A stretch of DNA of 64,000 bases from Rhodosorus marinus CCMP1338 (GCA_029953675.1 JAMWBK010000007.1:744001-808000); one strand, 5' to 3'. Shown: positions 6,906-53,518, counted from the stretch's first letter. The notes: a model not told the origin generated them from the letters alone. A program made the numbers and translations.

Positions 6906-9326
6906 CCGTGGAAGGACGGCCGATGATTCCTGTCGCAGACTACCCGCGGTTTCCTTTCATGTTCCTCGCCAAGTACGTGGACAATGATACTTGTCTTGGT
7001 AGTGGATGGGATGCAGCTCGCAGGCTGGGACCGATAAGGAAGTTGAAACGTTTTTCGACTGGGTTCCGGTTGACTTGGGGAGATCATGCGACGCGGAGAT
7101 CGTGTTGAGGTGAAACCAGACCAGGATTAGGTCAACGACCCAATCTTGTTCTAGAATATGACTTTTCATTGAACAAGATGCTTGGATCCCGCGGAGAGTA
7201 CCCTGGAAGAATTGTAACGGATAGCCTTGAGAGAGAGAAGACTCGTTGCTCACTGGGATGTCGATTAGAAAACCTAGCGAATCACGCGAGACGTCCGTGG
7301 CTGAGTTTCGCTTCTCCTGTTTGCTCTTAAAACCCGCATGCTCGAAGAAAGCTTGTAGTACGAGCCACTCGTCGCTTCGCAAGGACGTTAAGCATGTATG
7401 AGAAGGAAACTTGTACTACTAGTTGTGTACTCCGGAAACGCTGCAAGACGAGCAACGACCGAAGTAGAAAACTTCGGCAGGCATTGGATTAGTGCTCCCC
7501 GCAATTTAGTGCAATATCAATGCGTGGTGATAATGTAGAGAAATGAACCGCAACTCAAGAAGATGCCCATGAATCTGTAGTTGGATCCATCCCTCACCAG
7601 ACAGACAAGCACTATCGGGGCACCCCATTGAAACGTATAAGATCGGTTTCCAACTGCTCCTTCCACAGTAGGGCGAAATCCATGCTTGAAAATAGACTTT
7701 CGAAGAACGATTCCATTGCAAACCATTACAATAAGTGAGAAGTAAGCTCAAGTTCGCTTTTTCGATAAGGCCGGGGAGAGCCAACAAACTCATAAAACAA
7801 GATCAACTAGTGAGACTCAAATGAGACAAGAAAGCACCCAGAAGCTCCAAACTGAATCTATACACTCACAGTCACAAGAAAACAACTCCAATTCTGCCCT
7901 TTTCCCGTCATACCCACTGTCTACCTCAGCTTCAACATCCCCATCACTAAGTGACACCAACCCACATCCTCGATTCGCTCCGATCCCCCGAACTTCCACA
8001 CCTTCGAAAACGAAAAAAAACACGCGCATTATATCGTATTCCCTTTCAAAAACATTTTATCGCAGCTTGGAAGACAACCGCCAATAGCTTCACGCCTTCA
8101 CACTTGTCCGTAGAAAATCCTCTTCCTTCACCAGGAACCAATTTATAAACCAAAACATTTTCTTAGTTTTCAACCAATCATAGCTATGTGAAGTGAAAGG
8201 TATTTTCAAGTAAATACAGAAATTCTCCATTGTGCATTCAAAAAATTTAAAACTTTCCATTCAAAGAAATAGTTACATTCTACCCCCTTCACAACGACAC
8301 CAAGAAAAATTCGCAATTGCATTGTGAGTATTGATTAGCGTTATTATCTTGTTGTCCTGGATCCAGTACCCCTCCGAGCTGCACCTCGTATAAAATCTGG
8401 CAGAAAAACTCCAAAATACAATAAATCACGTCTATGACCTTTTTTTCCAACTTTCTTGAAGCCCGCCAAAAAATGTTTGTTTAGAGAATATCTGGGACGT
8501 ATGTGGACATCAGTATCATTCTTAAGAAGAAAAACATCAACTCTGGACGTAGATTATAAGCCTAGGCCTTCGGAAGATCGTTAATTTAAGATAGATGGTG
8601 TCAGCCGTTTGAAGACAGCTTGTCTTCTACTTTAAGCGGGAAATCTCTCTATTCGCATTGGGGCCAACGTCTCTTAATCTATTCTTCAGTACGAAGGCGA
8701 TTGGTTTTCTCCATATGAGAAAACGACCAAATTGATGTTTTCTGCTGGTGGAAGCGACGGATGCGGTTGAGTGAGAGAGCTGAGCTCTCTGCGGGGGCTT
8801 AATTTCTCAAAAGAAAGAACTTTCCTCAGTCTCAGATTTCGGATATCTTCATCTGCCGCGACTGAAATATGTCTGAAAGGAAAGTTTCTCAGAATTCAAG
8901 TTCATCCAGTGAAAGCCTCTGTACGTTCTGATGATGTCTCTAGTGAGATGACCATCTGAAATGAGCGGAGCGACCAAATGATGATGTGCACTGCATGTTT
9001 TTGTGGGAGTCTGGTCGGAATGCGGTCGAGTCTGGAGAAAATTGGTGCATCTCAGCCCGTGAGTGAAGCATACTGAGCTTGTTAAGGAGAACCTAGCACG
9101 GACCATGGCGCCACGTCTCGAAATACAGCTGATGACAGCGAAGGATAGAGTGACGATCTAGGGTTGAAACTGCCTGTGATGTGACCTTGAGACGGCATTT
9201 TCGACCGGATGAAGCTGCACTCGAGGTTGATGCAAAGTTTGGGGCTAACGTCTTATTAGAGCTCAAGACCAAGATTTGAATACTACGTCTACGAGAATCG
9301 CGACCAGTCCAAAGCCGATCGAAGAG

Positions 9327-9332
9327 TATAAA
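9327..9332 (+). promoter_or_regulatory. TATA-like box of spondin genes (representative copy)
   Basis: TATAAA(A/G)G lies ~115-130 nt upstream of the ATG in A (9327, 15089, 24240, 32571, 41428), B (21591, 38529, 49370) and the divergent C copy (52694). Confidence 0.7.
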
Positions 9333-9444
9333 GGATGACCTGAGACCCGTCAGCTCGGTCCGTGTCATCGGGGCAGACAACAAAGACAACAGCAGAACAG
9401 TGCATCGAGCTAAGAGATAAGGAGTAAGGAATATATACTAGAAA

Positions 9445-10131
9445 ATGGTTTCTAAGATTGTGATTTTGCTTGCCGCAGCCTTCGCGGTTTGCGCCATGGG
9501 ATCTGACGTTGCAATCAACGACGCTGAGAGGGTGTCGAAGAAGTGCAGCGGGAAGGCCATCTATTTGGTTCAGATCGACTATTTGTGGACCGGTGCTACC
9601 CACCCCTTCGCTTATCCGGATAATGGTTACTTCTCGCCTACAACGGTTGCGTCGCACGGAAATGGTTTCCACCTGTGGACTCCTCACGGCTACTCGACCA
9701 GGGGTGTTGAGAACGTCGCCGAGCGAGGCAGGTTGAACTTCCTTCTGGCAGAGTTGGCGGCACAGAAGGGCCGCAATGTGTTCGATTTCGTCTACACCGA
9801 GGAACGCACTGAGGACGGATCTGAGACTGTGAAGCTGCTGATCAAGCTTGACTGCACGCGCACCTACGTTTCTGGCATCTCCATGCTGACACCGAGCCCG
9901 GACTGGTTCACTGGATTCGATGATGCCAACCTGTGTATTGACGGGGAGTGGATTAAGAACTACGAGAGGAACCTGAGTGTCTGGGACGCGGGAACGGACA
10001 AGGGAGAAGACTTTGAATCCCGGAACAGGAACCAGATCCCAAGGGAGCCGATTGTGTCAATCCTTGGATCGCGGTTCAACTCGGTTCCTGTCGGAACCGT
10101 TAAGATCATCCGCAAGCGTGTCTTCCAGTAA
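9445..10131 (+). CDS. Secreted Spondin_N-domain protein, type A (A1)
   Basis: Hydrophobic signal peptide and motifs LW..ATHP..YP..GYFS, SMLTPSPDWFTG, LC, WDAGTDKG and P..PI typical of Spondin_N (PF06468). Confidence 0.9.
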   Translation: MVSKIVILLAAAFAVCAMGSDVAINDAERVSKKCSGKAIYLVQIDYLWTGATHPFAYPDNGYFSPTTVASHGNGFHLWTPHGYSTRGVENVAERGRLNFLLAELAAQKGRNVFDFVYTEERTEDGSETVKLLIKLDCTRTYVSGISMLTPSPDWFTGFDDANLCIDGEWIKNYERNLSVWDAGTDKGEDFESRNRNQIPREPIVSILGSRFNSVPVGTVKIIRKRVFQ

Positions 10132-10471
10132 ATAGTCTTCGATGTTTTGCACCTATGTACTCTAGGAGTGCCGAAGGAAGTCTCTTGACCACAGATTTAC
10201 TCTTGCGAGAAGCACAATTCTCCACACTAAAGAACTTCCCCTTTTTCCATGGAAACTCCTGACAGCTTCTGCCACCACCTGCTATCAACGCGAACTCCGA
10301 CGGAGGCTCAAGCACTGTCAGCATGTTTATGAAGGCTAACTGGACACAGGGACTCTACGAGTTCGGGCCGAACAAGACGGCTGCACAGGCGCATAGAGGA
10401 CGAAGACAGAGACTGTGCTCGAGGAAAACATAGATTAAAGACACAGTACTTGCGGTACTTGGACAACGAAA

Positions 10472-10593
10472 ATGCTCGCCGAGGCGCGCCATCGCCATCG
10501 CCGCCTGGGTTTTGCACGCTTTTCTCCCTAGTTCCTAGTCCCCTTTCACGCCCTGCGTAGCGGCTCAGGCTATGCTAGTAAATCCATCCACCT
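10472..10593 (+). mobile_element. ~120 bp 5'-truncated CRE-like 3' end
   Basis: atgctcgccgaggcgcgcc...ctgggttttgcacgct...gccctgcgtagcggctcaggctatgctagta. Absent from the paralogous spacer Z copies. Confidence 0.75.
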
Positions 10594-11429
10594 ATGAAAT
10601 GAGAGTTTCATAACCGTCCCAATGACGATGATTTGCAAGGGCTCGCAGAGTTTGGCTTGTTACTGGGTGGGAAAAACTCAAGGGCGAGACCGCGAATGCG
10701 GAAACCCAAAGCCAAGAGTTCCAACACATTTTCCCGTTCCGTTCTAAAAACCCGAGATGGCCCACCGAGGCCAAAAGTTTGACGGACAAAACTGTCGCCT
10801 ATTCCCTACTAATTCCTAAAGAAATCCCGCAAAAAGCTACACTATTTCCAGGATTTCCTCATTTAGGGCTGGGGAATACAAAAACCCAACCCCATTTGAC
10901 GGTAAAAGTTGACCCAACCTTAGGTTTAAACACTTTTTAAAAGGAAGGTTCGATGAGCTTGGTTGGTGGGTCTGGTAAAGTTTTCTTGAATAAACTAGAC
11001 CACAGCAAGAGCTTCGTCCGTGATCATTGTAAAAGGGGCTACGGAAATCCGTTAGGAAATGGTCTGGTCAAACTGCACATCGACCACGGTCCGACGACTA
11101 GGCCATGTGGACTACGTACCCAAGACTTGTACGTAACCAAGTCTTGTTATGCTTGCTGACAGACTTGACATCCCAGTGCATGTCCCGGCAAATCTGCGGC
11201 GCACCCCCCCACGCGCCAGACAACGGCTAGCCTGAGGATTTGTGTACTGTCGACCTGAACTGCTAGGGAGGGTGAGGTATGTGAGGACGGTGATTCGAAA
11301 AATGGTTTGTGCACATGTGGGAAGAGTCAGTTTTACTTTTCAAGCGCATGCCTCCAACACGGAGCAGTCAATCAAATAACAGCCTCCCCGGGGCTCCACG
11401 ATGGAGAGATGTTAAACCTCATAGACCAG

Positions 11430-11539
11430 TTAGTTGAAGACTCTGACACGCGTGAACTTTACGGTTCCGACCCGAATTCCGTCGAATCGAGGCGCCAGGA
11501 TCGAAAGAATCCGCTCCTCGGGTTCTGGTTCTTGTTCGC
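11430..11539 (-). pseudogene. 3' stub of type B spondin gene
   Basis: Reverse complement of the last ~36 codons of B plus the B 3' flank. Joined directly to the distal half of spacer Y. Confidence 0.85.
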
Positions 11540-12086
11540 TGGACAGGTTTTGATCAACAATCGTTCACCAGACCAAAAAGGCGGTACTTACTAAAAAAGT
11601 TACCGTAACAGACTGTCCTAAAAACTGTCGGGGCTCTGTACACTTTTACAATCAAACTTTTTTTAAAACAATCGAGAGGAGAGCACACTCATTCCATTTT
11701 CCAATAGAAGCGCGAAAGCTGGATTTTTTTATTTTATGGTAAATCTCAGAACGTTTGTTTTGCGATGAAAAAGAGATGAGAACGTTGGATACCTCTGTTG
11801 ACCAATGTTTTAGCTTTGTTTTTAAAGCATGGAAGACGCTGTGGTTTTGTTTTCCGATTTTTTGAGTTGTTTATTTTCTCCTGGAGAAGGCGATTGAAAA
11901 GAGGCGATGAACAAGGGATTGGGGATGGCTGAGCTTGCTGAGGAAAGTAGAACCTGCCCGAGCTGCTTCGTTCGCTTTCAATGGGATAGTAAGCTGGCTA
12001 CGTCAAGGAATAATTTTTAAGCAATTCCTGTTGATAGGATAGAAGAACGTCAATCGCCGTTCATCGCGTTTGCGACATTTTGAATA

Positions 12087-12183
12087 CTAGCTCGGCTTGC
12101 GTGCCTTGGGCCCTACTCACTAGTTCCCTTTCAGCCCTGCGCAGCGCTTAAGAGTATGTTGTTAAACCACTACCACCACCACT
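12087..12183 (+). mobile_element. Short CRE-like 3' fragment in the B(+) upstream region
   Basis: ctagttccctttcagccctgcgcagcgcttaagagtatg...accaccacc. Same site as the 37.95-38.07 kb copy and absent from the B(-) arms. Confidence 0.6.
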
Positions 12184-12625
12184 GGAGAAGACGGCATCTA
12201 TTCGGAGACTAAAATAGGGGGTCTACCGTACCTTAGTTGGTTCAGTTCACTAGTACTGTCGATTTCCCTCGAGGGATGGGGTGCAAGGCTTCGTATACGT
12301 GTGGACATTTTGAAATAGGAAGCACCATAGCGTAGGATACTGCTGTCCGAGACCCCTGGGGCTAGACATTGTAACCTTCCGCGAATAATTTTCCAGACTA
12401 TGGTATAGGCAGGGACGATGATCCAATCTATCACTTGGGTCAGATCGCGGAGCGTAGGAGGAGGCAGATGTTCATGGATTCGGAAGGACGACTCCGATCA
12501 CAGGTTGTAAAAGGTGGCCGATACTCGGCAAGTTTGACAATTTCTTTGGAGCAAGACAACAAAGACAGCTGAGCAGAGCAGTACAACGAGCTAACAGACA
12601 AGGAGCTACAGATATATACAAGAGA

Positions 12626-13330
12626 ATGGTTTCCAAGATTGTGATTTTGGCCGCCACAGTCCACGCGGTTTGCGCCATGGGATCTGATGTTGCCATCAAC
12701 GACGCTGAGAGGATGTCAAAGAAGTGTAACGGGTCAGCCCTGTACAAGGTGGTGTTCGAATACTTGTGGACCGGTGCGACCCACCCCGACGCGTACCCGG
12801 AGGATGGACACTTCTCCCAGACAGTTGTTGCTTCCCACGGAAATGGATACCACCTGTGGACCCCTTACGCATACTCCACAAGGGGAGTTGAAGAAATTGC
12901 CGAGAGAGGCAAGATCAACACCCTCCTGACCGAGCTGAACCAGCAGAAGGACCGCAACGTCTTCGACTTTGTGTATTCCGACGAACCCACCGAGGACGGA
13001 TCTCAAAAAGTTACCCTCCTTATCAAACTCGACTACACTCGCACCTACGCCCCTGCCATCTCCATGGCTGCACCGAGCCCGGACTGGTTCACTGGATTCG
13101 ATGACGCTAACATGTGTGTTGACGGCAAGTGGGTGAAGGAGTACGAGAGGAACTTGAGCGTGTGGGACGCCGGAATGGACAAGGGGGCTGACTTCTTATC
13201 TGCGAACAAGAACCAGAACCCGAGGGAGCCGATTGTCTCAATCCTGGCAACTCGATTCGACGGAATTCGGGTCGGAAGCGTAAAGATCACTCGTGTTGGA
13301 GTTTTCAACTATCTGGTCTATGAGGTTTAA
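12626..13330 (+). CDS. Spondin_N protein type B (B1), stop-loss C-terminal extension
   Basis: 234 aa ending RVGVFNYLVYEV (TAA to TAT). Upstream TATA position reads TGTAAAA (12506). Confidence 0.85.
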   Translation: MVSKIVILAATVHAVCAMGSDVAINDAERMSKKCNGSALYKVVFEYLWTGATHPDAYPEDGHFSQTVVASHGNGYHLWTPYAYSTRGVEEIAERGKINTLLTELNQQKDRNVFDFVYSDEPTEDGSQKVTLLIKLDYTRTYAPAISMAAPSPDWFTGFDDANMCVDGKWVKEYERNLSVWDAGMDKGADFLSANKNQNPREPIVSILATRFDGIRVGSVKITRVGVFNYLVYEV

Positions 13331-15211
13331 CATCTCCTCATCTGAGAGTCCCTGGGATATTTGTTAGTTTGTGGACTACCTCCTGCGGGAGGCACGAGTT
13401 CGAAATTAAAAATTGAATCTTCCCACATAAGCACAAACGAGTTACGAACTCTCGGCGCTCACATGACCCAGCCCTATTATCCCCGTACAGACGAGCACTA
13501 CCAGAGCGCCTATCGAAGTGTATACGATCGTTTCCAATTTTTTTTTTTTGCTCATTCCACAGTAGGGGGAATTCCATGCTTGCAAACCATCACAATGAGA
13601 GAAGCAAACTCAAGTTGCCTCCTTCGACAAGCCCGGGAACAGCCAACAAACGGGTAGAAACAAGATCGCATAATGAGGCTCAAACGAGCGAAGGACGCAG
13701 CCAGTTGCTCTAAACTGAATGTACAGACTCAAAATCACAAAAATACAATTCCAATTCCGCCCGTTTTCCATCAGACCCACCGCGTACCCAGCTTCCACAC
13801 CTCATCACCAAGTGACACCGGCCCACATCCTCAATTCGCTCAGATGAGCCCTCAACTTCAATTCCTTCGAAAACGCTCAAAGAAAATGGATGACATCGTA
13901 TTTCTGCTCAAAAGCTATTATCGGTACTTAAAAAGCAACCGCCAATAGCTTGACGCCCTCATCCACGTCCGTAGAAAATCCTCTTCCTTCACCATGAACT
14001 CAATTAATAAACCAAAAACATATTCTGGGTGCATCTTTTAACCAATCGCAACTGCGCAGAGAAAAAGTATTCGCAAATAAATGCAAGCATTCTCGAATTT
14101 TGTAACTAAAACAATTGAAAAAAAAGTATTCCAAGAAAAATAGTTTCATTCTACCCCCTGCGTCCAGGACCCTAGGAATCAGATGCAATTGTATTGTGAG
14201 TGTCCATACAGATTTTTCAGTTTTTGTCCTGCGATCATGTACCCCTCCACGGGACGCCGTAGAAAATCTTCTCTAAGAGAAAAACTCCCAAATATAAGAA
14301 ATCACTTATTTGACGTTTTTATTTCTAAATTGCTTGAAGTCCCCTGCTCGTCTATCTCGTTCCAAATAATCTTTGTTTAGAGAATATCTGGGACTCGTCG
14401 ACACGAATACAATAATGAAGATGGAAAACCAACCCTCACATACCTAGATTATAAGCCTAGGCCCTCGTGAAATCGTTAATTTAAGATAGTCGAATGTGTC
14501 AGTGGTTTGAAGACAGCCTGTCGCTATTTTTCTTGGAAAATCTCTCTATGCGCATTGGGGCCAACTTCTATTATTACTTTTCATTACGAAAGCGATTGGT
14601 TTTCTCTATAGGAGGAGAAAACGACCAAATTGATGTTTTCTGCTGGTGGAAGCGATGGATGGGTTGAGTGGGAGAGCTAAGCTCTGCGTGGTCAATTTCT
14701 CAATAGAAAGAGCTTTCGTCCGTTTCATGTCACAGATTTCGCATACCTTCATCTGCTATCGCTGAGGTGAAGTATGGCTGAAAGGAGCCTTTCTCAGAAT
14801 TCAGGTTCATCCGCTGAAAGCCTTTGTACGTTCTGATGTCATCTCTGGTGAGATGACCATCGGAAATGAGTGGGGCAACTAAATGATGATGTATGCTGCA
14901 TGTTTTTGTTTGGGTATGTTCGGAATGATGTCGAGTTTGGAGACAGTTGGTGCATTTTCGACCGGATGAAACCACAACCGAGGTTGACGCAAAGTTTGGG
15001 GCTAACGTCGTCCTATGAGAGCTCAAGACCGAGATCTGAATGCTACGTCGACGAGAATGGAGACGCCTCCAAAATTCGATCGAAAGAGTATAAAGGGTGA
15101 CCCGAGACCCGTCAACTCGGACCGTGTCATCGAGGCAGACAACAAAGACAACAGTAGAACAGAACAGTACATCCAGCCAAGAGATAAGAACTAAAGAATA
15201 CATACTAGAAA

Positions 15212-15898
15212 ATGGTTTCCAAGATTGTGATTTTGCTTGCCGCAGCCTTCGCGGTTTGAGCCATGGGATCTGACGTTGCGATCAACGACGCAGAGAGGGT
15301 GTCGAAGAAGTGCAGCGGGAAGGCCATCTATTTGGTTCAGATCGACTATTTGTGGACCGGTGCTACCCACCCCTTCGCCTACCCGGATGACGGATACTTC
15401 TCGCCTACAACGGTTGCGTCCCACGGAAACGGTTTCCACCTGTGGACTCCTCACGGCTACTCGACCAGGGGTGTTGAGACCGTCGCCGAGCGAGGCAGGT
15501 TGAACTTCCTTCTGGCTGAGTTGGCCGCACAGAAGGGCCGCAATGTGTTCGACTTCGTTTACACCGAGGAACGCACTGAGGACGGATCTGAGACAGTGAA
15601 GCTGCTTGTCAAGCTTGAATACACGCGAACCTACGTTTCTGGCATCTCCATGCTGACACCGAGCCCGGACTGGTTCACTGGATTCGATGATGCCAACCTG
15701 TGTGTTGACGGGGAGTGGATTAAGAACTACGAGAGGAACCTGAGTGTCTGGGACGCGGGAACGGACAAGGGAGAAGACTTTGAGTCTCCGAACAGGAACC
15801 AGTTCCCAAGGAGGCCGATTGTGTCAATCCTTGGATCTCGATTCAACTCGGTTCCTGTCGGAACCGTTAAGATCATCCGCAAGCGTGTCTTCAAGTAA
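15212..15898 (+). pseudogene. Spondin_N type A (A2) with nonsense codon in the signal peptide
   Basis: TGC to TGA at codon 16 (15257-15259). The rest of the frame is open from Met18 (15263). Confidence 0.85.
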
Positions 15899-16039
15899 AT
15901 CGTTTCCGAGATTTTGCACGCATGTACTCTATGAGTTTCGATGGAAGTATATTGAGAAGATGATTGCCTCTTGCGAGAACCACAATTCAAACCACAATAA
16001 AGAACTTCCCCTTTTCCACGGAAATAATTGACTACTCCC

Positions 16040-16633
16040 GCACAAAGATCATTCAAAATAGAGTTGGAGAACCCGGAAGGGTTTCTCCGACACGTAAAGT
16101 TCTTAGCAGACCACCACCACTTCTCTAACCACCTGCTATCAACGCGAACTCCGAAAAGAACGATTCTCAACCCACCCAGCAGCTCAGGGCTACTGGAAGG
16201 ACTGAACAGATTGGAGCATGAAAAGAGACGGAAGATGATAGGTACAATTCCGTGGATTCTTCAAAACAACTACCTTGAAATGAGGGTGCCATTTGTTGGA
16301 ACTGCATGTTCTTTCAGAGCTACAGAGACCCGTGGAGGCACAAAGATCATTCAAAATAGAGTCGGAGAGCAGAGAAGGGTTTCTCCAACAAGTTCTTAGT
16401 ATACCACCACCACTTCTCGAACCACCCGCTATAAGGCGAACTCCGAAAAGAAGAACAGTTCTCACCCCACCCAACTGCTCGGGGCTAGCGGGGGAAGGGA
16501 CAGATTGGAGTTTGAAGAGAGACACAAAATGATAGATACAATACCGGAGATTCTTCAGAACAACTACCTTGAAATGAGGGTGCAATTTGTTGGAACTGGA
16601 TGCTCTTTCAGAGCTATAGAGACCCATGGAGGC
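16040..16633. repeat. 298-bp tandem duplication in spacer Z
   Basis: gcacaaagatcattcaaaatagagt at 16040 and 16338. The junction shares a GCACA microhomology. Confidence 0.85.
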
Positions 16634-39785: not shown

Positions 39786-39875
39786 TCACAAGAAAACAAT
39801 TCATGATCATGGGAGCCACAAGTATCGGGAGATAATGCTTGTGGAGGTGCTGACCACGTCACAAGAAAACAATTC
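39786..39875. other. 56-nt insertion flanked by a 17-bp direct repeat
   Basis: tcacaagaaaacaattc at 39786-39802 and 39859-39875. Single-copy at the paralogous sites. Confidence 0.8.
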
Positions 39876-43019: not shown

Positions 43020-45103
43020 TTTACTGGCTTTATTGGCTATGGCTTTATTAGCATAGCCTGAAGCGCTACGCAAACTGGCTTTATTGGCTATGGCTTTATT
43101 AGCATAGCCTGAAGCGCTACGCAAACCGTGAAAAGGAACTAAGAACTAGGTAGAGGAGCGTGCAAACCCAGGCGCCTATGGCCCGCTTCGGCAAGCATGC
43201 TACTCGAATATCGCCACAGAGAGACACTTAAACGCCGCCAAAGTAACCCCTCAACAGAATGCTCAGTAAAACATTTCCGCAACCACTCCAAACCCGACTT
43301 CTCCACGCGACCAAAGCTTTCCACAATGAAGGGCTGGAACCGGTGGGAGCGACCAGCCGCCGGGGAGCAGCGGCTTCGGCCGCGTGAAGGAACAAGGGTA
43401 TGCTGAGAGTATGGCCAGTCTGCTTCGCGCTGACTGGCCATACTCTAGCCGTGAGATGGGCGCTTGCCACAGGGCATGTAATCGCGAGGTCAACATATGC
43501 TGAGCGTCTGGCGGCTGCATCGGAGACGAGTAGATCTGCGATACAGTGGGGCGGTGCCGTATCCGAGACCGATCTGGGTAGTTTCGATTCCACCTCAACC
43601 GTATGCCCTAACCGAGTCTAATATTCGGTGAGAATGTACTTGAAGCGAGTGTGACGCCTCGTACGAAGACCTCTCAACAGTCCGCATGAACCTAAGAAGT
43701 GGCAACCACAAGCATCGATCTGACTCTCACATCCCTAACAGAAAGACGGTCGATTAGAGTGAAACAGAGCTTGTGTCAAACCCAGATAGATCCGTGCAGC
43801 AGAGCGGAACTGAAAGGCATCGAGACGGTGACCCAGTGAGGAAGGCAGCGTGGTCAACCACAAGTGCGATAGGTTGCCTCCCATGCCGCGGAGGCGAGCG
43901 GCAGTGACCCCCCGGGGCTGCCTTCCCCCTCTTCTGCAAGGACTCTGTCGATGGGAGAGTCCTCGATCGCCTCAGTACGTCCCCATAACAGCTCTCTCCA
44001 GGAGCGGAACTTGGATCGATTCTCGTCCGGCACGGTGTTGCACTTGCTGAACGCCTGTTGCAGAGCATCATGGATACTCAAAAGCGGTGGCGGAAGGGTC
44101 GGGGGGTCTTCGCTAGTCAGTGCTCTAGCCAAAAGGCAAACACTTCGCATCCGAAAACTCACCAAGGCGCGAAGCGCGGTAGCCCAGGAGACGCCCGCCG
44201 CAGGCGAGCACACGAGTCCACGGTCGGCCACTCCAAATCCACCTAATCGCAACGGTAGCGAAATCTGGGCACGAATTAGGTCCCTGTCAGGAGCCGCTTC
44301 ATCATCCAGGGGTTCATCCAAGAGCGTTCCCCAGTGCTTTGGCATCGCCTCGTCCGCCTTGGCTGCCATCCACGAGCCCCAATGTGGTGGAAGGCGTAGC
44401 AGCCAGTAATTCAGCCGGGGGCCGGCACAAAAGCGCGGAAGCAGGCTTGCATATTGTAGCATGCTGTCCGGTAGGCGCTCAATGGCGTCAGTGAGCTGCT
44501 TATGGCGTGCTAAAACTCGTTCGCAGAAGAGTCTTGCACGAAGTTGTCACTCCCGAAATCGACGCCATGGTGCTCGAGCCCCTCACGTTCACCAAAGACT
44601 CGGAGACAAGATGGCAGGGAGCCCGTCGAAACTTCACGCGGGGCGAGAAAACGGAATTTTTCGGGTTCCACGGTCAGACCTACTCCACGTGCTATCGCTT
44701 CGATCTGGGTCAATCCCCGAGCGAAGGTCTCAGGGGTGCCCAGCAACGTCACGTCGTCGTGGTAGGCACAGATTCGAAGATCTGGCACCTCAGCCGCCAG
44801 TCGCAAGAGCACGAGCTGCAAAGCACAGGCGTGAAGTACAGGCCCACAAGGATCACCCTGTTGAACGCCAGTACGTGCTGTAAAAACAGGGCCCTGCCCC
44901 CCCCTCCGTAAATGCCGGATAGGAACGGCCACGCCTCCGGGAATACCCTTCGAATCACCTCCAAAGCATGCGTCCGCGAGACGCTGTTGAACGCGTTACG
45001 GAAGTCAACCATGAAAACGCCCTAATCCGGCCTACTGGCTCGCTCGAGCTCGATCGCATGAGTGATCAGCTCGCAACCCCCGGAAAATCCCACCCCTACA
45101 TGG
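43020..45103 (-). mobile_element. 5'-truncated, degenerate CRE-clade non-LTR retrotransposon (RT + zinc knuckle + restriction-like endonuclease)
   Basis: GVGFSGGCELITHAI, VDFRNAFNSVSR, GVQQGDPCGP, AYHDDV, LPLRLGGFG, C.GC..D..G.HF..C, IADLL..AYVDLAIT and FQPFIVESFG. Interrupted by frameshifts and stops. Confidence 0.9.
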
Positions 45104-45507
45104 GTTGAGAAAAGTCTTGTTGAATAAATTAGGAAACGCAAAAGTTGTGTCCTCGATCATCGCAAGCCGGCTTAGAGATCTAATACTGCTTTTTCAAGTG
45201 CTACGAAGAGATTGTGTGAACAAAGCTAACTTCCAACAATACCATGAAATTCATATGCACTTGGGGTGCAATGAACGATTCACGAACCCAGGGTTAACCT
45301 GCTTCACTTTCCTTATGTGCTAGTGTCGACCTGAACTGCTTGATAGGATGAGGTATGTGAGGGATGGTGGTTCAAAAACTCGTTTGTATTTGTGTGGGAA
45401 GAGTCAGTTTTAAGTTTCGAACGCGTGCCTCCCGCAGGGGGCAGTGGAATAACTAACAGATATCCCCCCGGCTCTCAGATGGAGATTTGCGAACGCTAAT
45501 AGGCCAG

Positions 45508-46194
45508 CTAGTTGAAGACTCGAACACGCGTGACCTTTACGGTTCCGACCCGAATTCCGTCGAATCGAGTTGACAAGATCGAAACAATCGGCTTCCTCGG
45601 GTTCTGGTTCTTGTTCGCAGATAAGAAGTCAGCTCCCTTGTCCGTTCCGGCGTCCCACACGCTCAGGTTCCTCTCATACTCCCTCACCCACTTGCCTTCA
45701 ACACACATGTTAGCGTCATCGAATCCAGTGAACCAGTCCGGGCTCGGTGCAGCCATGGAGATGGCAGACGCGTAGGTGCGAGTGTAGTCGAGCTTGATAA
45801 GCAGGGTAACCTTTTGAGATCCGTTCTCGGTGGGTTCGTCGGAATACACAAAGTCGAAGACGTTGCGGCCCTTCTGCTGGTTCAGCTCGGACAGGAGGGT
45901 GTTGATCTTGCCTCTCTCGGCAATTTGTTCAACTCCCCTTGTCGAGTAGCCGTGAGGGGTCCACAGGTGGTATCCGTTTCCGTGGGAAGCAACAACTGTC
46001 TGGGAGAAGTGTCCATCCTCCGGGTATGCGTCTGGGTGGGTCGCACCGGTCCACAAGTAGTCGAAAACCACCTTGTACAGGGCTGACCCGTTACACTTCT
46101 TTGACATCCTCTCAGCGTCGTTGATGGCAACATCAGATCCCATGGCGCAGACCGCGAGGACTGCGGCGGCCAAAATCACCATCTTGGAAACCAT
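45508..46194 (-). CDS. Spondin_N protein type B (B8)
   Basis: 228-aa ORF with B-type motifs. Confidence 0.9.
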   Translation of the reverse strand: MVSKMVILAAAVLAVCAMGSDVAINDAERMSKKCNGSALYKVVFDYLWTGATHPDAYPEDGHFSQTVVASHGNGYHLWTPHGYSTRGVEQIAERGKINTLLSELNQQKGRNVFDFVYSDEPTENGSQKVTLLIKLDYTRTYASAISMAAPSPDWFTGFDDANMCVEGKWVREYERNLSVWDAGTDKGADFLSANKNQNPRKPIVSILSTRFDGIRVGTVKVTRVRVFN

Positions 46195-49100
46195 TCTCTT
46201 GTATGTGTCTGTAACTCCTTGTCTATTAGCTCGTTGTACTGCTCTGCTCTGCTCTGCTCTGTTTGTTGTCTTGCTCCAAAGAAAATATCAAACTTGCCGG
46301 GAGTCGGTCATCTTTTATAACCTGTGATCGGAGTCGTACTTCCGAATCGATGCGGGTGGAGCTGCAAACTATGCTGATGGTGCTAGCCCCAGAAATGGGT
46401 AGTGAGTCGATCACTGGCCTCGATCTGTCGAAACTAAATCTAACTTCGACAAAAACATCCGCCGCGTACGCTCCTCGATTTGACCCAAGTGTAGAGTGGA
46501 TCATCGCCCCGTTTAAACTACAGTCAGGAAATTATTCACAGAAGGTTAGTCTGTCTCGGCCCAGTGCTCTCGGAAAATATGGTAGCCTAGGCTGATGTGC
46601 TTCAATAGGTCCACCGGCGTTACCCAGCCTTACACCCCATTCATCGGAGAAAATCAACGCTACCCGTGGACTGTGCCAGCTGAGCAAACCTACAGTACTC
46701 AAAAGCCAACGTTCAATATGGGTCAACTCGATGAACGGGCATTAAAACATTCGGCATGAAGTGCGATTGACGTTTCTTCTATCCTACCGCAGGATTTGTG
46801 CACGGACTATTCCTTGAGTTACCCAGTTTACCACGCTTGAGATGGAAAGGAAGGAGGTAGGGCAGGATCTCTACGCCCATTATCTACTTTCCTAAGCCAG
46901 CTCGCCATCCTCAATCCTGTTGACATTGCCTCTTTCCTGCTTTCCCCGAGGAGAAATAATATCGCTCAAAAGATCAGAAAACAAACTTTCCGTGCTACAA
47001 AAAAAGTCCAAAACATTGGCCAACGGAGGTGTCCAATGTTCCGATCTCTTTTTCCGTACAAAAGAAACGTTTAAAAATATTAGCACTCAAAACGTTTCTG
47101 TAAAAAAAGTGGCTTGCGAGCTTCCATTGGAATATGGCAAATGCTCAATCGGGAGTTGTTAAAGGAATCTCAGGGGGAAGAAAAGCGCTATCGACGGTGC
47201 ACATTTGCGCCTTCAATATCAAAACAGCATATTTACGCGGCACAAGGGACAACTCGACTGAGCAAACAACGAATAGAGCCGGTTAGTAAGACGCTCAGCG
47301 AACGGTCCTCAAATTCCATGGCAATCAACAGTCCAAGATTCGGAAACGCGCAACAACAAACAGGACAATTCGATAGGCCAAAAGCCGAAGCTCGGATATC
47401 TTGAGTGAACACCGGGGGCGTCGTCGGTTACATTCCGAAGTCTCATACAAAACCACCACAACCTAACAACTCCGGTGCTGCCCGTGAACTAAGTCCCAGT
47501 TCTTAAAGTGGGACAATTTGCTGGAGATCGATTCATGTCCAATCAAAATATTAAAACAAATGATGGTTTACGTCAAGTTTTGGCTTACAAAAAGTTTCCT
47601 GGATAAATTGTAATGGAAAATATTTACCACAATGGAGCCCTTCTGATTTTTTTGAATGAAAATCCTTTTTCGACGCACAAGATATTAATGGGAGAAGTAT
47701 TTTGATTCATATCTCCACAGTCCAAATGATTGGTTTTTGCAATGCCCATTTTCTTTCACTATTCAAGTAGTGTTTAGAGCGTTTTAATTGGTTAACACAG
47801 ATTCATTTTGATTTGAGTTGAATACGGACCAGATGGTTGGTTGTTGGGAGAAGTCTTTTGATTCACGACATCAAGATCGACTCTGTGAAAATAGAGAAAA
47901 CTGAAGTTTGACTGGTTGTTGGAAATTGGGGCGAGGGAGGTCTGTTCCTCGAGTCAGTTAGGGAGGAAATCGAGCGGGTTTGGGGTCAAACTGTGTCGAG
48001 AGCAGCCGGTGGAGGTTGTGTGAGTTTGCACTCGAGCGGGCAAACTTTGTGCGATGGACGATTGAGGACAGCCATCTTTCAGATGAACTGCGAAGTATGC
48101 TCCAACTATGCTCCCATGCTTGGCGGGGCGATACGGACGTTGAGCATTTAGTTTTTCGTGTTTTGTGTACTTGCTCCGGTATTGGACGCTGGTACTAACG
48201 AAAGTGATCCGGCTGTTTCATAATTGTAGCGTTCGCCCCAATTCATCGAATGTTGTACGAGTTGATCATCTGGACCGAGCGTGTTCTCTAGCTCGACAAG
48301 AACTGGCGTACGCGGCTAGATCTTCGGGTTATCGAAGTCTCCTAAAAGAAGTTCGGAAGCGAACCCATTGTCGAGATGCTTTGGGCAATCACAAAAACCT
48401 CATCCTTCTTGTCCCAACCAAACTGCGAATTCAACAAGTAATGTTTCGGTTTCCCCTAAAAAAGACGTCTTGATCAACAATCTCCCACCAGACCGAAAAG
48501 CAGTATTTGTAAAAAACAAAATAGGTGTCAGACTGTCGTGACTCATAGATAGCAAGTCGGCGATATGGGCAGGGAGGAAGCATTTTTCATTTCAACCTAT
48601 TTTCTTTTTTAAACGAAATAGCGTGATCTTCCATCTTCCAATAGAAGGCCGATTTTGAAAGCCAGATTTCTTGCTTTAATTTCTCCTTGGAGAAAGCAAC
48701 AGGACAAGAGGCGATGTCAATGGGATTGAGGATGATGGCTGAGCTGGCTCAGGAAGAAGGCCGAAGCCAATGATCCTGCTCCAGTTCCGTCCTTTCCCTG
48801 CTCAAGCACGGTAAACTAGGCAACTCAAGGAATAGTTTGCGGGAAACCTTCCTGTTGATAGGTTAGAAGAAATATCAATCGTCGTTCATTGCTGAGCCAT
48901 TTACACTGGTGACTCTGAACTGAATAAGTAGATCAGTATTCGGAGACTGGAAAAAACACCTCTTAGGGTCTGTTGTAAGCTGGGTAGTCTGGCTCAGTTC
49001 CCTGGTAGCGTCGATCTTCTCTAATGGATGAGGTTTAAGTTTTGGTAACGCCCGTGGATCTATTCAAATAAAAGAAAAAGGAAACCCAGTGGTCAACCAA

Positions 49101-49494
49101 GCACAGCAGCCTAAACCACTGGGGTAGACAGACTAGCCTTCTGTGAATAATTTCCTGACTATAGTTTAGACAGTACGATGATCCAATCTATCACTCGGGT
49201 CAAATCGAGGGGCGTACGAGGCAGATGTTTCTGTCGATGTCAGATTTAGTTTCGACAGATCGAGGCCAGTGATCTACTTACGTCCTCTTTCTGGGGCTAA
49301 CACCATCAGCATAGTTTGCAGCTCCACCCATCTCGACATCGATTCGGAAGTACGACTCCGATCACAGGTTATAAAAGGTGGCCGATATCTGGCAAGTTTG
49401 ACATTTTCTTTGGAGCAAGACAACGAAGAGAGCAGAGCAGAGCAGAGCAGTACAACGAGCTAATAGACAAGGAGTTACAGATATATACAAGAGA

Positions 49495-50181
49495 ATGGTT
49501 TCCAAGATTGTGATTTTCGCCGCCGCGATCCTCGCGGTCTCCGTCATGGGTTCTGATGTTGCCATCAACGACGCTGAGAGGATGTCAAAGAAGTGTAACG
49601 GGTCAGCCCTGTACAAGGTGGTGTTCGACTACTTGTGGACCGGTGCGACCCACCCAGACGCATACCCTGAGGATGGACACTTCTCCCAGACAGTTGTTGC
49701 TTCCCACGGAAATGGATACCACCTGTGGACCCCTCACGGATACTCCACAAGGGGAGTAGAGTCAATTGCCGAGAGAGGCAAGATCAGCACCCTCCTGTCC
49801 GAGCTGAACCAGCAGAAGGGCCGCAACGTCTTCGACTTTGTGTATTCCGACGATCCCACCGAGGCCGGATCTCAAAAGGTTACCCTGCTCATCAAGCTCG
49901 ACTACACTCGCACCTACGCCTCTGCCATCTCCATGGCTGCACCGAGCCCGGACTGGTTCACTGGATTTGATGACGCTAACATGTGTGTTGACGGCAAGTG
50001 GGTGAGGGAGTACAAGAGGAACCTGAGCGTTTGGGACGCCGGAACGGACAAGGGGGCTGACTTCTTGTCTGCGAACAAGAACCAGATCCCAAGGAAGCCG
50101 ATTGTTTCGATCCTGGCAACTCGTTTCGACGGAATTCGGGTCGGAACCGTAAAGGTCACGCGTGTTCGAGTCTTCAACTAA
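49495..50181 (+). CDS. Spondin_N protein type B (B9)
   Basis: 228-aa ORF. Inverted partner of B8. Confidence 0.9.
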   Translation: MVSKIVIFAAAILAVSVMGSDVAINDAERMSKKCNGSALYKVVFDYLWTGATHPDAYPEDGHFSQTVVASHGNGYHLWTPHGYSTRGVESIAERGKISTLLSELNQQKGRNVFDFVYSDDPTEAGSQKVTLLIKLDYTRTYASAISMAAPSPDWFTGFDDANMCVDGKWVREYKRNLSVWDAGTDKGADFLSANKNQIPRKPIVSILATRFDGIRVGTVKVTRVRVFN

Positions 50182-50929
50182 CTTGTGCATGCGGTTTAAC
50201 ATCTCTCCCTCGGAGAGCCCCGGGGATGTCTGTTGGTTTGTGGACTACCTCCTGCGGGGGGTACGAGCTCGACAATTAAAACTGAATTTTCCCACACAAG
50301 TACAAACAGGTTGTTGAGCCACCATCCCTCACATACCCCAACCTATCGAGCAGCTCAGGTCGACACTAACACACAAGGAAGTGAAAGTTTTGGCTAAGCA
50401 AGTAGAAGGAGTTCAAGCTCCAGTTCGTGACTCGTTAATTCTTCAGGAACATACTAATTTCATGGTTCAGTTGAAAGCTGTGGTTTCACTCGAACTCTGT
50501 GCTAAATCTCAGCAAAGCAATAGTTGTTTTCTCAGACCCTGTGTCGATGATTCTGCACGGAACTTTTCCTTGTAGTATAACCACCAATCTATTCAGCAAT
50601 ACTCTGCTACGTCTGGTGGTTTTACTAACATAGCCTGATGGGATACGTCTGGCAACGAATAATAATCCTAAATCCCCTCGCTCATCGAATCTTCCCTTTT
50701 TAAAGTGCTTTGACTATCAAAAGAATAATGACTCAATCCATCGTCCTGCCGGCGGCAAAAAGAACGAACCAACATAGAGGCAAGAAGCGACAGCCCGACA
50801 GAATCGTGGAAACAGCAGCTCCACGTCATTTCCGCGCCGCTGACGGATAACAGCTAGCTGGGGGCGGCTGGCTTCGTGACCTCCCTAGTCTGGAATCTGA
50901 GCTCCTTTCGGCGGAACAAATTCGATACA

Positions 50930-51345
50930 GATAACGCCTTCTTTTGGGGCTACCGATAGCTGGTCTCGCACCGCCTGAATGCACGGTCTGTGCGAAACCT
51001 CATGCTGCGTATGGGATTCAAAGCGTATTCCACTCCTCAACCTCGGCCGGGAATTAAATTTTGAGACTAAATAGTATTCGTGATGAACTTCCGCGTCCAC
51101 TGCGGCGGTGGCACGTTCATGAGGTTCAAGCTGAGCACCACAAGTTTTGAGGGTAGCCGTCTACGACCACGCATTGCTGTTCGTCATCATCGTACATGTA
51201 AGCAATATGCTCTTTATGTCAAACTAGACTTCCCAGTAAGAGCCCATCTTAGTCGCTCGTGCCGCCTGTCAAACCGGCTATGCTGCAGTCAACGCGGAAG
51301 CACGGAAACGAGTCAAATATCGCGATGAGGGAATATGGTGAGGAA
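50930..51345 (+). mobile_element. Old CRE-like relic (zinc knuckle/endonuclease region)
   Basis: Broken frames RLLLGLPIAGLAPPECTVC, YVKLDFPVRAHL and GYAAVNAEARKRVKY resemble the corresponding motifs of the 43-kb element and this clade. Confidence 0.45.
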
Positions 51346-52822
51346 TCGGCGATTCCAGTGCGTAAGTAAAACATGACTGTTCTGCTTTTGATGTCTATTC
51401 TGGGTTTTTAGCGGTGAACCGGAAAAGGTTAAAATACACTTTTTCTCTAGGGGTTCTGGAGGGAAATCGTTAGTCTGGGGTTACTCGGGTTACATCGAAA
51501 ACAGAGTGTTTTCGCGGATTCTATTTGTTTCAGGATCGGACATGGTTCCGGTGGAGAGCATCGCATCGATCGGGAAGTTCGGGGAATTGATTGCAAGTGA
51601 AATCCCCCACGAATTCCCTCGATCAGGGTTGGAGTGGATCCGCTTACCGAGCGTTTCTGAGAGTTGCCGAGACTCCCGTCTCCATCCATTCCCGATGGAT
51701 TTGACTGGGGGAAAATGAGATGGTAGAAAATCTTGATCAACTCTGTTGCTCTTAGTTTAGGCGAAATCGATTTTCCAGGTTATCAAATATTATAGAAACA
51801 CAAATATCTAGCCACTGGGTTTAGATGCTTTTGACTCGTATTGTCCGTAATTATGAAGAATCGTCCTAGGATGTTTCTACTGTCAGCCTGTCAGCCGTTA
51901 AGCTGGATGGTTTTTATTCGGAATTGAATTATGTGTATCGAGTTCTCATTGTCGAGTGGGGCGATGTTTGATTTTTTCAGTTTGTCTCTGCTTGATGATG
52001 TGAGAAGTCATGAGATTGTGCTAATACGATGGTGTGCTGACCGATAGTCTTTGTTTTGTATGAATGGGGCCCTTCTATCGGTAGTCTTAAGGCTCTTGTG
52101 AAGTTTGTGGTCGCTTTTTTTTTGCTTTAGCCGGTTGTCTGGAAGTGCACCTTTTGGGGCGATATCAGATGCTCCTGTTCACAGTCGACTGTCAATTTAT
52201 CCTAGGTTATTGCATAACTGCAACTACCTAGATTCAACTTCTGGTTGTAGATGAGATTGTCTTCCGCCATCACCTCGCTTGGGGCAAATGGACACCTCTT
52301 CCCGTGGAGAGAATTATACAATTATCTGACCAAATTTACCTGAATTCAAGAGCAGGTCAGGTGGATGCATCGTTTTCCAAGGTCAGATATTCAACATCAT
52401 GTAAGATGTGAGAGTGCGGAGATGCCCATGACGTCCTTGGAGAGATCAACTATTGCGACCGATCTTCACGTTCGGGGGTAAATGATCTCGCGCTGCACGG
52501 TGAGGAAGGGAAACCTGGGCCAACCCAGTTTTCCGAGAATCCCAGTTCATGCTATAAACGGCCAGGAGAAGCTAGTAGTGATGTTTTCATGCGCTTCAAT
52601 TCTTTGGACGAATAGCAATCGCGACGAGAGAACCTGATTCGATTTGCATGACGTTTAACCTCGTAGACGGAATCTCTCATGTCTTCCGAAGGATATAAAA
52701 GACAGCCAGAACCTGAAAAGAGTCCGGGCTATCTCGTTCACTATTCAACCAAGGTCTCAAGCAGCAAAGCAAAGAGAAAGGAGCGGCAACCCGATCGACG
52801 GGTTTCAAGGTTTGTTCGCAGG

Positions 52823-53518
52823 ATGTTTTCCAGGATGATGCTGCTTATCGCTGCCGCGGCGCTCGAGATCAGTGCTCTTGCCAGTCCAGTGCGGATCGAC
52901 GCCGTCGCCAGGCCTGGGCACTTCCCATGCAAGGGATCGGCTATCTACAAGATCGTTATCAAGTATTTGTGGACCGAGGCTACCCACCCTGACGCATACC
53001 AGCCCAGCGGGTACTTCTCGCCAACTGTCGTGGCTTCCCATGGAATCGGACTGTACGTATGGTCCCCTCACGGTTACTCGAGCAAAGGAGTTGAAGTTGT
53101 CGCGGAGAAAGGCAACCCAGCCACGCTCTTGAAGGAGCTCAAGGCGCAGAAGGGTCGCAACGTCTACGACATTAATTACACTGAGGAACGAACGGAAGAT
53201 GGATCCGAGAAGGTTAAGCTGCTGCTCAAGCTCGACTATACCAGGACCTACGCCTCCGGAATCTCCATGCTCATCCCCAGCCCGGACTGGTTCACTGGAT
53301 TCGACAACGTCAACCTCTGCGATGAGGAGAAGGGCAAGTGGGTCAAGGGGTGACAGAACCTCAGCGTGTGGGACGCCGGAACGGACAAGGGCATAGACTT
53401 CAAGTCCGCAAACAAGGATCAGAGTCCCAAGGAGCCCATCTAATCCATCCTCGGCTCTCGCTTCAATTCCATCCCCGTGAGTACCGTCAAGATGATCCTG
53501 GTCAGCAAAAAGAAGTAG
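52823..53518 (+). pseudogene. Divergent Spondin_N gene (type C) with two in-frame stops
   Basis: Signal peptide MFSRMMLLIAAAAL and motifs THPDAY, SPDWFTG and WDAGTDKG. TGA at 53351 and TAA at 53441; the frame otherwise continues to TAG at 53516. Confidence 0.85.

Follow-up and report, generated by a model that had tools for sequence, protein, structure and literature searches.

A tandem array of single-domain spondin genes with nested palindromes in the red alga Rhodosorus marinus

Studies of the FS (Spondin_N) domain have been confined to the matricellular proteins of animals. Yet the domain comprises about 2,700 sequence clusters, mostly from marine bacteria and algae, and no experimentally tested function was found among them. 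In F-spondin, the PSPDW and DAGTD motifs provide three aspartate ligands for Ca2+ (PMC3117680). In shrimp mindin, both the full-length protein and a construct of the TSP domain are reported to bind LPS and PGN strongly; the authors assigned microbe recognition to the TSP domain, while the FS domain bears integrin motifs (PMC11872611). The bacterial relatives classified under NF038123 are proteins of ~215-310 aa with a leader peptide and one FS domain. Elsewhere in the family, T9SS tails, Ig-like domains, TSP1 and multiple FS domains are found, which is an extracellular context. FS-only spondin-like (SPL) genes were reported in macroalgae, NySPL1-4 in Neopyropia yezoensis and SjSPL1-4 in Saccharina japonica, and are described as putative extracellular matrix proteins induced during reproduction (PMC11333212, PMC8991923). 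The family is thus already known from algae, and the sequence-only reading, which knew of no such array there, is only partly right: no published 16-locus spondin array in algae was found. The paper on the R. marinus genome makes no mention of spondin, and the literature searched on Spondin_N/PF06468, or on red-algal palindromes under gene conversion, yielded nothing relevant to algal arrays.

The window analyzed here is the whole 64-kb stretch of DNA. Its algal origin, proposed earlier from the sequence, was confirmed by an LdpA protein with 89% identity to that of Rhodosorus marinus and by spondins of class A and class C (C6) with 92% and 86% identity, respectively, to R. marinus transcripts, the latter to the intact protein P0002. 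Search by tblastn with two consensus proteins revealed 15 spondin loci and blastn added a 16th, which is a remnant. Of the 16 Spondin_N loci, 11 are intact ORFs and 5 are defective, exactly as counted previously, and all of them including C6 are situated inside one 46-kb block. With a cut-off of 24 bits, Pfam Spond_N (PF06468) scored the intact A and B proteins at 132-147 bits and C at 94 bits; NCBIfam NF038123, with a cut-off of 40, gave 71-74 bits. By phmmer, the structures 3Q13 (F-spondin) and 3D34 (mindin) were matched with E=5e-20 and E=3e-18. No exact-sequence match to a window spondin was present in the searched contig collection.

Self-similarity analysis resolved a tandem array at 7597..50307, in which an 8-9 kb unit, [A(+), B(-), B(+)], occurs five times. 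The five-unit array is 43 kb long and is followed by one diverged C pseudogene. At the left edge, self-similarity begins sharply at 7597, corresponding to +157 to +180 nt past the B(+) stops of other units, and at the right edge the homology downstream of B(+) stops at 50307, ~+126 nt past the B6p stop. Projected onto the unit, the two edges lie downstream of B(+) and at most ~50 nt apart, so that a single head-to-tail junction accounts for all five units. The order of genes in the B(-)/B(+)/A(+) triplets described earlier is real; as to phasing, junction mapping gives [A+, B-, B+] x5 plus a single C gene as the cleaner arrangement. The units carry private insertions and deletions, namely an insert with a reverse transcriptase (RT) fragment, a 1.8-kb unique segment and two independent deletions. 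The first of these is a GC-rich (0.548) unique insert recognized by self-comparison between A5 and B6m (43609..45139, minus strand), a degenerate retroelement with a reverse-transcriptase fragment (RVT_1 E=1.5e-8 for the ORF 44510-44932 on the minus strand). A Pfam scan of array spacer ORFs of at least 90 aa matched only this fragment and a sub-threshold DUF2616 (E=0.023), hence no partner gene is located within the array. Across the whole window, scans for tRNA genes and Rfam families gave no matches, and the tandem-repeat scan showed four small arrays and no more.

From left to right, the array starts with A1 (9445..10131, plus strand), an intact class A gene of 228 aa with Spond_N E=2.9e-38 and TATAAA at -118. 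It is followed by the remnant B2m (11436..11539, minus strand), the last ~35 codons of a B(-) gene (tblastn match aa 203-227), and by B2p (12626..13330, plus strand; ORF, tblastn), a class B gene of 234 aa with a stop-loss extension and an altered TATA box, TGTAAAA. The dN of B2p is the highest among B copies, and this gene may be in decay. A2 (15212..15898, plus strand) is a pseudogene with one nonsense change, TGC>TGA, at codon 16 in the leader. Apart from this codon its CDS is 99.0% identical to A3 at the DNA level, and a leaderless functional isoform started from an internal ATG (ORF 15263-15898) was considered unparsimonious as the sole change is one nonsense codon in an otherwise A3-like copy. 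If the R. marinus assembly (PMC10250338) is Nanopore-based, the single-base lesions which define some of the pseudogenes could be polishing errors. The intact class B genes B3m (17789..18475, minus strand; ORF, Pfam) and B3p (21711..22397, plus strand; ORF, tblastn) differ by one synonymous site and lie in an inverted repeat with arms 17629-18989 / 21215-22560 of 92.9% identity.

The intact gene A3 (24363..25049, plus strand; ORF, tblastn) is followed by the pseudogene B4m (26007..26692, minus strand), which has a frameshift in the leader and two in-frame stops, and by the remnant B4p (28912..28990, plus strand), the last ~25 codons of the gene, detected by blastn of 28912-29457 against 39265-39802. 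A common deletion breakpoint for B2m and B4p was ruled out, because local alignment placed the former at codon 193 and the latter is at codon 204; hence the deletions are independent. Next are the intact class A gene A4 (32693..33379, plus strand; ORF) and the intact class B pair B5m (34364..35050, minus strand) and B5p (38654..39340, plus strand), both found as ORFs and by blastn, in an inverted repeat with arms 34227-35543 / 38161-39480 of 96.2% identity. A5 (41545..42231, plus strand; ORF, tblastn), B6m (45508..46194, minus strand; ORF, blastn) and B6p (49495..50181, plus strand; ORF, tblastn) are also intact, and the last two are carried by an inverted repeat with arms 45303-46566 / 49117-50385 of 90.5% identity. 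Outside the repeated unit, C6 (52823..53518, plus strand) is a pseudogene of a third, diverged class with two in-frame stops and TATAAA at -129. Self-comparison showed that its likeness to A and B is confined to the coding part.

Divergence between copies differs strongly between coding and non-coding parts. The flanks share 71-96% identity while the coding regions within a class share 93-99.9%. Flank differences of 4-29% along with the private indels show that the array is not a collapsed assembly. The dN/dS among copies is 0.06-0.31, and each copy is under purifying selection; selection is required to keep 11 ORFs open at such values amid this flank divergence. As 5 of the 16 loci are in decay, copy number is not under strict selection for its maximum. 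Between units dS is 0.05-0.18, and between A and B it is ~0.7. The B(-) and B(+) partners inside a unit are far closer, with dS of 0.006 for B3m/B3p and 0.026 for B5m/B5p compared to 0.09-0.18 between units, and as a result the B copies cluster by unit and not by orientation. Such homogenised partners point to gene conversion, as does the 99.0% CDS identity of A2 and A3. The dosage amplification proposed earlier fits these data, as paralogues are homogenised and not diversified.

Full-length copies are intronless, being collinear with transcript-derived R. marinus proteins, and start with a signal-peptide-like leader. Judged from its sequence only, the leader has the n-region MVSK, a 13-residue h-region of mean Kyte-Doolittle 3.0 and the site CAMG|SD, so the products are putatively secreted. 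In 13 of 14 loci a TATAAA precedes the ATG by 117-129 nt, the exception being B2p; the whole window has 35 TATAAA on both strands. This position is kept across classes A, B and C though the upstream regions otherwise barely align. These three gene features had been read from the sequence before and they stand. Spondin ORFs have an ENC of 44.5-47.6 and GC3 of 0.70 compared to an ENC of 52-60 and GC3 of 0.56-0.67 in flanking genes, a contrast based on four reference genes and short ORFs. Each gene would form a self-contained, intronless, TATA-driven unit encoding a preprotein of 228 aa. This would be composed of a leader of ~19 aa, a short linker and one FS domain with one Ca2+ site and one disulfide (C34-C164).

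The window spondins are predicted to adopt the C2-like 8-stranded beta-sandwich of FS domains. An AF2 model of A4 had pLDDT 89.3 and pTM 0.82, and in Foldseek it matched 3D34 with TM 0.79/0.85 and 3Q13 with TM 0.79/0.77. The E values for the mindin and F-spondin FS domains were 1e-16 to 1e-18 and those of the next matches were >0.01. The motifs P150-S-P-D153-W and D181-A-G-T-D185 occur in A, B and C and are invariant or nearly so in 67 homologues, and the putative Ca2+ site is formed by D153, D181 and D185, with the ligands conserved. C34 and C164 align with the C(1)-C(4) disulfide common to mindin and F-spondin. Fold, motifs and cysteine pair are thus shared with the animal domains. Unlike mindin and F-spondin, the window proteins have no thrombospondin type 1 repeat (TSR) and no reelin-N match in the profile search, which detected Spond_N alone, and they end ~20 residues past the FS match. 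The F-spondin-specific extra disulfides and N214 glycan site are absent as well. The arginine pair R226/R227, which holds sulfate in F-spondin, is replaced by acidic or polar residues, and one obvious route to sulfated polysaccharide binding is therefore lost. Profile, motif and model evidence agree with the earlier description of single-domain products behind a leader with a conserved, predicted Ca2+ site.

Orthologues of A and C are present in R. marinus MMETSP transcriptomes and are therefore expressed there. No B-class orthologue was found in the searched data sets; the best match to B was the A orthologue at 74%. After Rhodosorus, the nearest named clade is that of the Bangiales proteins (Porphyra, Pyropia, Neopyropia), with 38-43% identity to the class A consensus in tblastn. 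Red-algal SPL-type proteins were nearer than bacterial sequences in a NJ tree of small sample. Origin by bacterial horizontal transfer was also considered; in this small, thinly sampled tree the algal sequences group together. Bacterial NF038123 proteins carry the same invariant motifs at 30-37% identity and many possess a T9SS sorting tail. Their genes were single-copy in both neighbourhoods examined, and some relatives multiply the domain in one polypeptide (up to 7-8 FS domains) and not the gene. The closest likeness is with NySPL and SjSPL, which are described as having a leader and a single FS/Spondin_N domain with neither TSR nor reelin-N (PMC11333212, PMC8991923). Unlike Rhodosorus, a unicellular alga with 16 loci in 46 kb, the macroalgae are reported to have four genes per genome, dispersed where located. 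For the published link of SPL to reproduction (ACC treatment, sorus formation), Rhodosorus offers no obvious counterpart.

The locus is a genuine, fairly old nuclear tandem array that rather probably arose as a dosage amplification of a secreted, Ca2+-dependent matrix or adhesion module. From its anatomy, an ancestral cluster would have held three FS-only paralogue classes, A, B and C. Head-to-head duplication of B would have formed the palindrome, and unequal crossing-over may have amplified the block [A+, B-, B+] to five tandem copies. Purifying selection on each copy and gene conversion between neighbouring copies and palindrome arms have since maintained ~11 intact copies as the spacers drifted. 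Amplification was probably for dosage: the array would supply, at high expression, two isoforms at ~1 A : 2 B of a soluble secreted binding module with a matrix ligand. Its site of action is probably the cell covering or mucilage, where it would organise the matrix or serve adhesion, the same role that is proposed for FS-only proteins of Neopyropia and Saccharina.

The earlier reading had named microbe recognition among the possible roles, by analogy with mindin. Here the proteins would form a secreted recognition or agglutination system, a mindin-like PRR, whose copies give breadth or quantity against phycosphere bacteria. The FS domains are of secreted type, animal mindin acts as an opsonin-like PRR, lectin-like recognition typically involves Ca2+-dependent binding surfaces, and marine bacteria and algae have abundant homologues. 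The analogy is not supported, since LPS and PGN binding maps to the TSP/TSR part of mindin (PMC11872611), which the algal proteins do not possess. Moreover, conversion-homogenised copies with dN/dS well below 1 are the opposite of a diversifying repertoire, making such a system unlikely. Integrins are not known from red algae, so the function of the mindin FS domain is not directly transferable either.

Quite improbable is a role in cell-surface ion or nutrient handling, in which the Ca2+ site buffers Ca2+ or captures anionic nutrients or phospho-compounds and copy number reflects demand under scarcity. The conserved predicted site would allow it, one bacterial homologue adjoins a phosphodiesterase gene (PF01663) and C2-like folds bind anionic head groups in other proteins (PMC3117680), but this is a single neighbourhood, the remaining bacterial and algal contexts have nothing in common with one another, and neither a transporter nor a partner enzyme is located within the array. 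The five broken loci, the difficulty of assembling repeats and the B class unseen in transcriptomes might hint at an assembly artefact, or at a neutral amplification that is largely dead and serves no function today. Either is very improbable, as mis-assembled identical repeats would not show such flank differences and private indels and the 11 open ORFs need selection.

On the preferred reading of a dosage-amplified matrix module, ~11 functional copies of a 23-kDa single-domain protein in a unicellular alga that can be cultured and has a chromosome-level genome should make the protein abundant and easily purified, a good entry to the ancestral ligand of the FS domain. If the proteins are ordinary matrix components, the result is a useful annotation with no conceptual advance.

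Five of the six Bangiales spondin loci examined are head-to-head, near-identical palindromes with arms 98-100% identical. Recurrence of spondin palindromes in two red-algal classes suggests selection on the gene arrangement. From these loci and all five units here, it may tentatively be proposed, with a rather small chance of being right, that the head-to-head palindrome is an ancient or repeatedly selected red-algal arrangement in which arm conversion preserves a co-regulated double dose, and that Rhodosorus amplified it jointly with a partner isoform, the gene ratio being fixed at 1 A : 2 B. Such a ratio hints at an assembly of A and B, in defined stoichiometry, into an extracellular lattice or coat that depends on Ca2+. 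Tandem gene families and gene-bearing palindromes kept by gene conversion are known, for example the palindromes of ampliconic genes on sex chromosomes. Like them, the present array has a shared head-to-tail junction, arms closer within than between units, and CDS far better conserved than spacers. Unlike them, it is a small autosomal-type array in an algal genome of the 31-Mb class. It represents a compact natural palindrome nested in a higher-order tandem repeat, where gene conversion can be measured, and its arm identity is 90-96% compared to >99.9% in sex-chromosome palindromes.

The open reading frames (ORFs) listed by translation of the window included ten of 228 aa and one of 234 aa, which divide into classes A and B (~76% protein identity between the two). 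The consensus proteins of both classes matched 15 loci in the window by tblastn, and a 16th, the remnant at 28912-28990, was added by blastn. The 16 loci and 11 intact genes counted in the sequence-only reading were therefore reproduced. Against the Pfam Spond_N model, A and B score 132-147 bits and C scores 94 bits (cut-off 24). The genes were also correctly described as intronless, since their ORFs align collinearly both to Rhodosorus proteins derived from transcripts and to F-spondin/Spondin_N (FS) domains of solved structure. Among the defective loci, A2 (15212-15898) has a single nonsense change, TGC>TGA in codon 16, and B4m (26007-26692, minus strand) has a leader frameshift and two in-frame stops. 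B2m (11436-11539) and B4p (28912-28990) are 3' remnants, mostly removed by two independent deletions. C6 (52823-53518), which represents a third, diverged class, contains two in-frame stops. Its transcript-derived R. marinus orthologue from MMETSP (P0002, 86% identical) is intact and transcribed, and the C6 lesions are either sequencing errors or a loss specific to this strain or species. The published R. marinus CCMP1338 assembly is Nanopore-based, with 31.2 Mb in total and 13 contigs >1 Mb (PMC10250338); if the same holds for the assembly underlying the window, the single-base pseudogene lesions are provisional at read level.

Self-comparison of the window showed that the repeated DNA starts abruptly at 7597 and ends at ~50307-50498. 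The left edge corresponds to +157 to +180 nt past the B(+) stop codons of other units, and at the right edge the similarity to sequence downstream of B(+) in other units stops +126 nt past the B6p stop codon. Thus one head-to-tail junction accounts for the whole array. It is composed of five tandem 8-9 kb units, each in the order A(+), B(-), B(+); beyond them lie unique sequence and the only C gene. The triplet order reported from sequence alone is real, but its phase is shifted to this arrangement, which leaves no truncated unit. B(-) and B(+) of each unit form a head-to-head inverted repeat, whose arms of ~1.3 kb share 90.5-96.2% identity and lie 2.2-2.6 kb apart. The fifth unit is longer because of a unique, GC-rich (0.548) insert of ~1.5 kb between A5 and B6m (43609-45139), private to one unit. 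The insert contains a degenerate reverse-transcriptase ORF on the minus strand (44510-44932; RVT_1, E=1.5e-8) and is probably a dead non-LTR retroelement. A 51-nt tandem repeat is situated at 43023-43126. The spacer upstream of A4 holds a unique segment of 1.8 kb (30113-31891), in which ORFs of 129 and 168 aa have no Pfam match. No further gene, tRNA or Rfam family was found in the array spacers by Pfam searches of spacer ORFs and by tRNA and Rfam scans. Just 3' of the A2 pseudogene, a 294-bp unit occurs twice in tandem with 84% match (16040-16636).

The conserved TATA element noticed earlier was borne out. TATAAA is located 117-129 nt 5' of the ATG in 13 of the 14 full-length loci, the remaining one, B2p, having TGTAAAA in its place. 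It is retained in all three classes despite upstream regions which are otherwise barely alignable, and the whole window has only 35 TATAAA on both strands. The N-terminus of the proteins consists of MVSK, 13 hydrophobic residues and then CAMG|SD, and residues 1-30 are disordered in the AF2 model. The claimed signal peptide is thus supported by its n/h/c layout, while secretion itself is predicted from the sequence. Codon usage was compared with four flanking genes. The spondin genes have an ENC of 44.5-47.6 and a GC3 of 0.70, against 52-60 and 0.56-0.67 in the flanking genes; this stronger codon bias weakly suggests high expression.

In phmmer searches the only PDB matches were F-spondin 3Q13 (E=5e-20) and mindin 3D34 (E=3e-18), and the AF2 model (pLDDT 89.3, built on 67 homologues) resembles only these two structures, with TM 0.77-0.85. 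In F-spondin, Ca2+ is bound by D325 in PSPDW and by D354/D358 in DAGTD (PMC3117680). Their counterparts D153, D181 and D185 vary little or not at all within the family, and the alignment shows that the Ca2+ site is intact, at the level of sequence, in these single FS domains. The mature protein has just two cysteines, C34 and C164, and these match in the alignment the C(1)-C(4) disulfide that mindin and F-spondin have in common. The R226/R227 pair, by which sulfate is held in the crystal of F-spondin, has not been retained in the window proteins. Translation and Pfam searches found no thrombospondin repeat (TSR), reelin-N, transmembrane or anchor segment in the window spondins. As several animal features are absent, the window proteins fall outside the F-spondin/mindin family proper. 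The mature products are ~23.5 kDa with pI 6.0-6.4, and both A and B possess the N-glycosylation sequon N176, with an extra N35 in B.

The exhaustive scan placed these proteins in a family of 2,718 clusters at 50% identity (E<=1e-3). It includes many single-domain proteins from bacteria, some of which carry a T9SS tail, and other members with 2-8 FS domains per chain or with Ig-like or TSP1 partners. The overall picture of the FS domain is that of an extracellular binding module. In two environmental proteins, P0253 (3704 aa) and P0254 (1526 aa), a single chain contains 7-8 FS domains in tandem, which suggests that FS multivalency has been selected repeatedly, by domain repetition elsewhere and by gene repetition in the window. 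FS-only spondin-like genes in algae, NySPL1-4 of Neopyropia yezoensis and SjSPL1-4 of Saccharina japonica, are described as putative matrix proteins induced in gametogenesis or sorus formation (PMC11333212, PMC8991923). The kind of protein is therefore known, and the window genes are members of it.

The genes are TATA-driven and intronless, each encoding a single FS domain, and we propose that their products are secreted and abundant. The array would then provide dosage of two isoforms at a gene ratio of ~1 A to 2 B, and in the cell covering or mucilage the FS proteins could serve as binding modules that depend on Ca2+. The earlier idea of dosage-amplified secreted FS proteins is supported in this form, but a mindin-like immune role is not. 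Microbe recognition, suggested by analogy with mindin, is unlikely. In mindin of shrimp, it is the TSP (thrombospondin repeat) domain, absent here, to which LPS/PGN binding is assigned, and the FS domain holds the integrin site (PMC11872611), which makes the analogy weak; a recognition repertoire would also be expected to diversify, the opposite of these homogenised copies under purifying selection. A role of the proteins in nutrient or ion handling appears somewhat less probable still. The array offers an experimentally tractable route to the function of non-animal FS domains.

Identity between copies is 71-96% in the flanks and 93-99.9% in the coding regions. By the Nei-Gojobori method, dN/dS is 0.06-0.31 throughout, and dS is 0.05-0.18 between units and ~0.7 between A and B. 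The B copies group by unit, not by orientation, because dS of the B(-)/B(+) partners (0.006 in unit 3, 0.026 in unit 5) is lower than that between units (0.09-0.18). A2 and A3 are 99.0% identical in their CDS. The likeness of the B partners and that of A2 and A3 are signatures of gene conversion, i.e. concerted evolution. An assembly artefact or a dead array, the former named in the sequence-only reading as what would undo its claim, is highly improbable, as collapse or expansion of identical repeats is incompatible with the diverged flanks and private indels of the units and ORFs still open at such flank divergence require purifying selection on most copies. These comparisons show that the array is real and is kept up by purifying selection and gene conversion.

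Comparison loci from other genomes were analysed for similar arrangements. Spondin is single-copy within +/-10 kb in two bacterial loci, in Bryopsis and in one Porphyra umbilicalis locus. In each of the other examined Bangiales loci, spondin genes form a head-to-head pair whose arms are almost identical. Three such loci, each on its own contig, are from Pyropia vietnamensis (arms 0.9-1.6 kb, 98-100% identity), one is from N. yezoensis (1.17 kb, 99%) and one further locus is from P. umbilicalis. The pairs are located at L010 6625-10914, L011 6576-10911, L013 6650-10974, L014 7605-10714, L015 4966-10911 and L017 152-3498, and no other inverted repeat >=300 nt occurs in these 20-kb loci. At L015 the palindrome lacks a spacer; since the spacing is different on the NCBI scaffold (L017), assembly may be partly responsible. 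The Bangiales pairs indicate that the B(-)/B(+) palindrome is a recurrent red-algal spondin architecture; what sets Rhodosorus apart is that the palindrome, along with an A gene, has been amplified five-fold in tandem. The palindrome is either ancestral or recurrent; in protein trees the paralogues group by lineage, a pattern which conversion would yield too. As to whether such arrays are routine in related algae, none was found among the loci examined, but head-to-head pairs are present in Bangiales. Spondin is absent from the text of the R. marinus CCMP1338 genome paper (PMC10250338). Here a known gene family and a known kind of genome feature, the large palindrome-based array, take a new organisational form. 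The array is of value for this tractability, and the cross-lineage palindrome pattern is a second source of its value.

Flanking LdpA is 89% identical to that of R. marinus MMETSP0011, and class A is 92% identical to the transcript-derived R. marinus orthologue P0001. Classes A and C already existed when the MMETSP strain split off, and that strain expresses both. No B-class orthologue was found in any searched data set, the best match being the A orthologue (74%). In the tree, however, A and B separate earlier than the lineage diverges from the MMETSP strain; B is either lost or silent in that strain, or its evolution is unusual. The MMETSP contig of the A orthologue (L001) includes ~700 nt of sequence 5' of the ATG and reaches beyond the position of the TATA. 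This stretch (42-745) aligns with the A1 upstream spacer (window 8756-9444; 79.5% over the whole match including CDS), which implies that the same A1-type spacer is present in the MMETSP strain; it could stem from transcriptional read-through or from carry-over of genomic DNA. The flanking genes, encoding a class 3 lipase with EF-hand (2493-4424), LdpA (54228-55367), thiamin pyrophosphokinase (58783-59523) and a Na+/H+ antiporter (61152-63461), are long uninterrupted ORFs, in contrast to the published R. marinus genome average of ~three introns per gene (PMC10250338).
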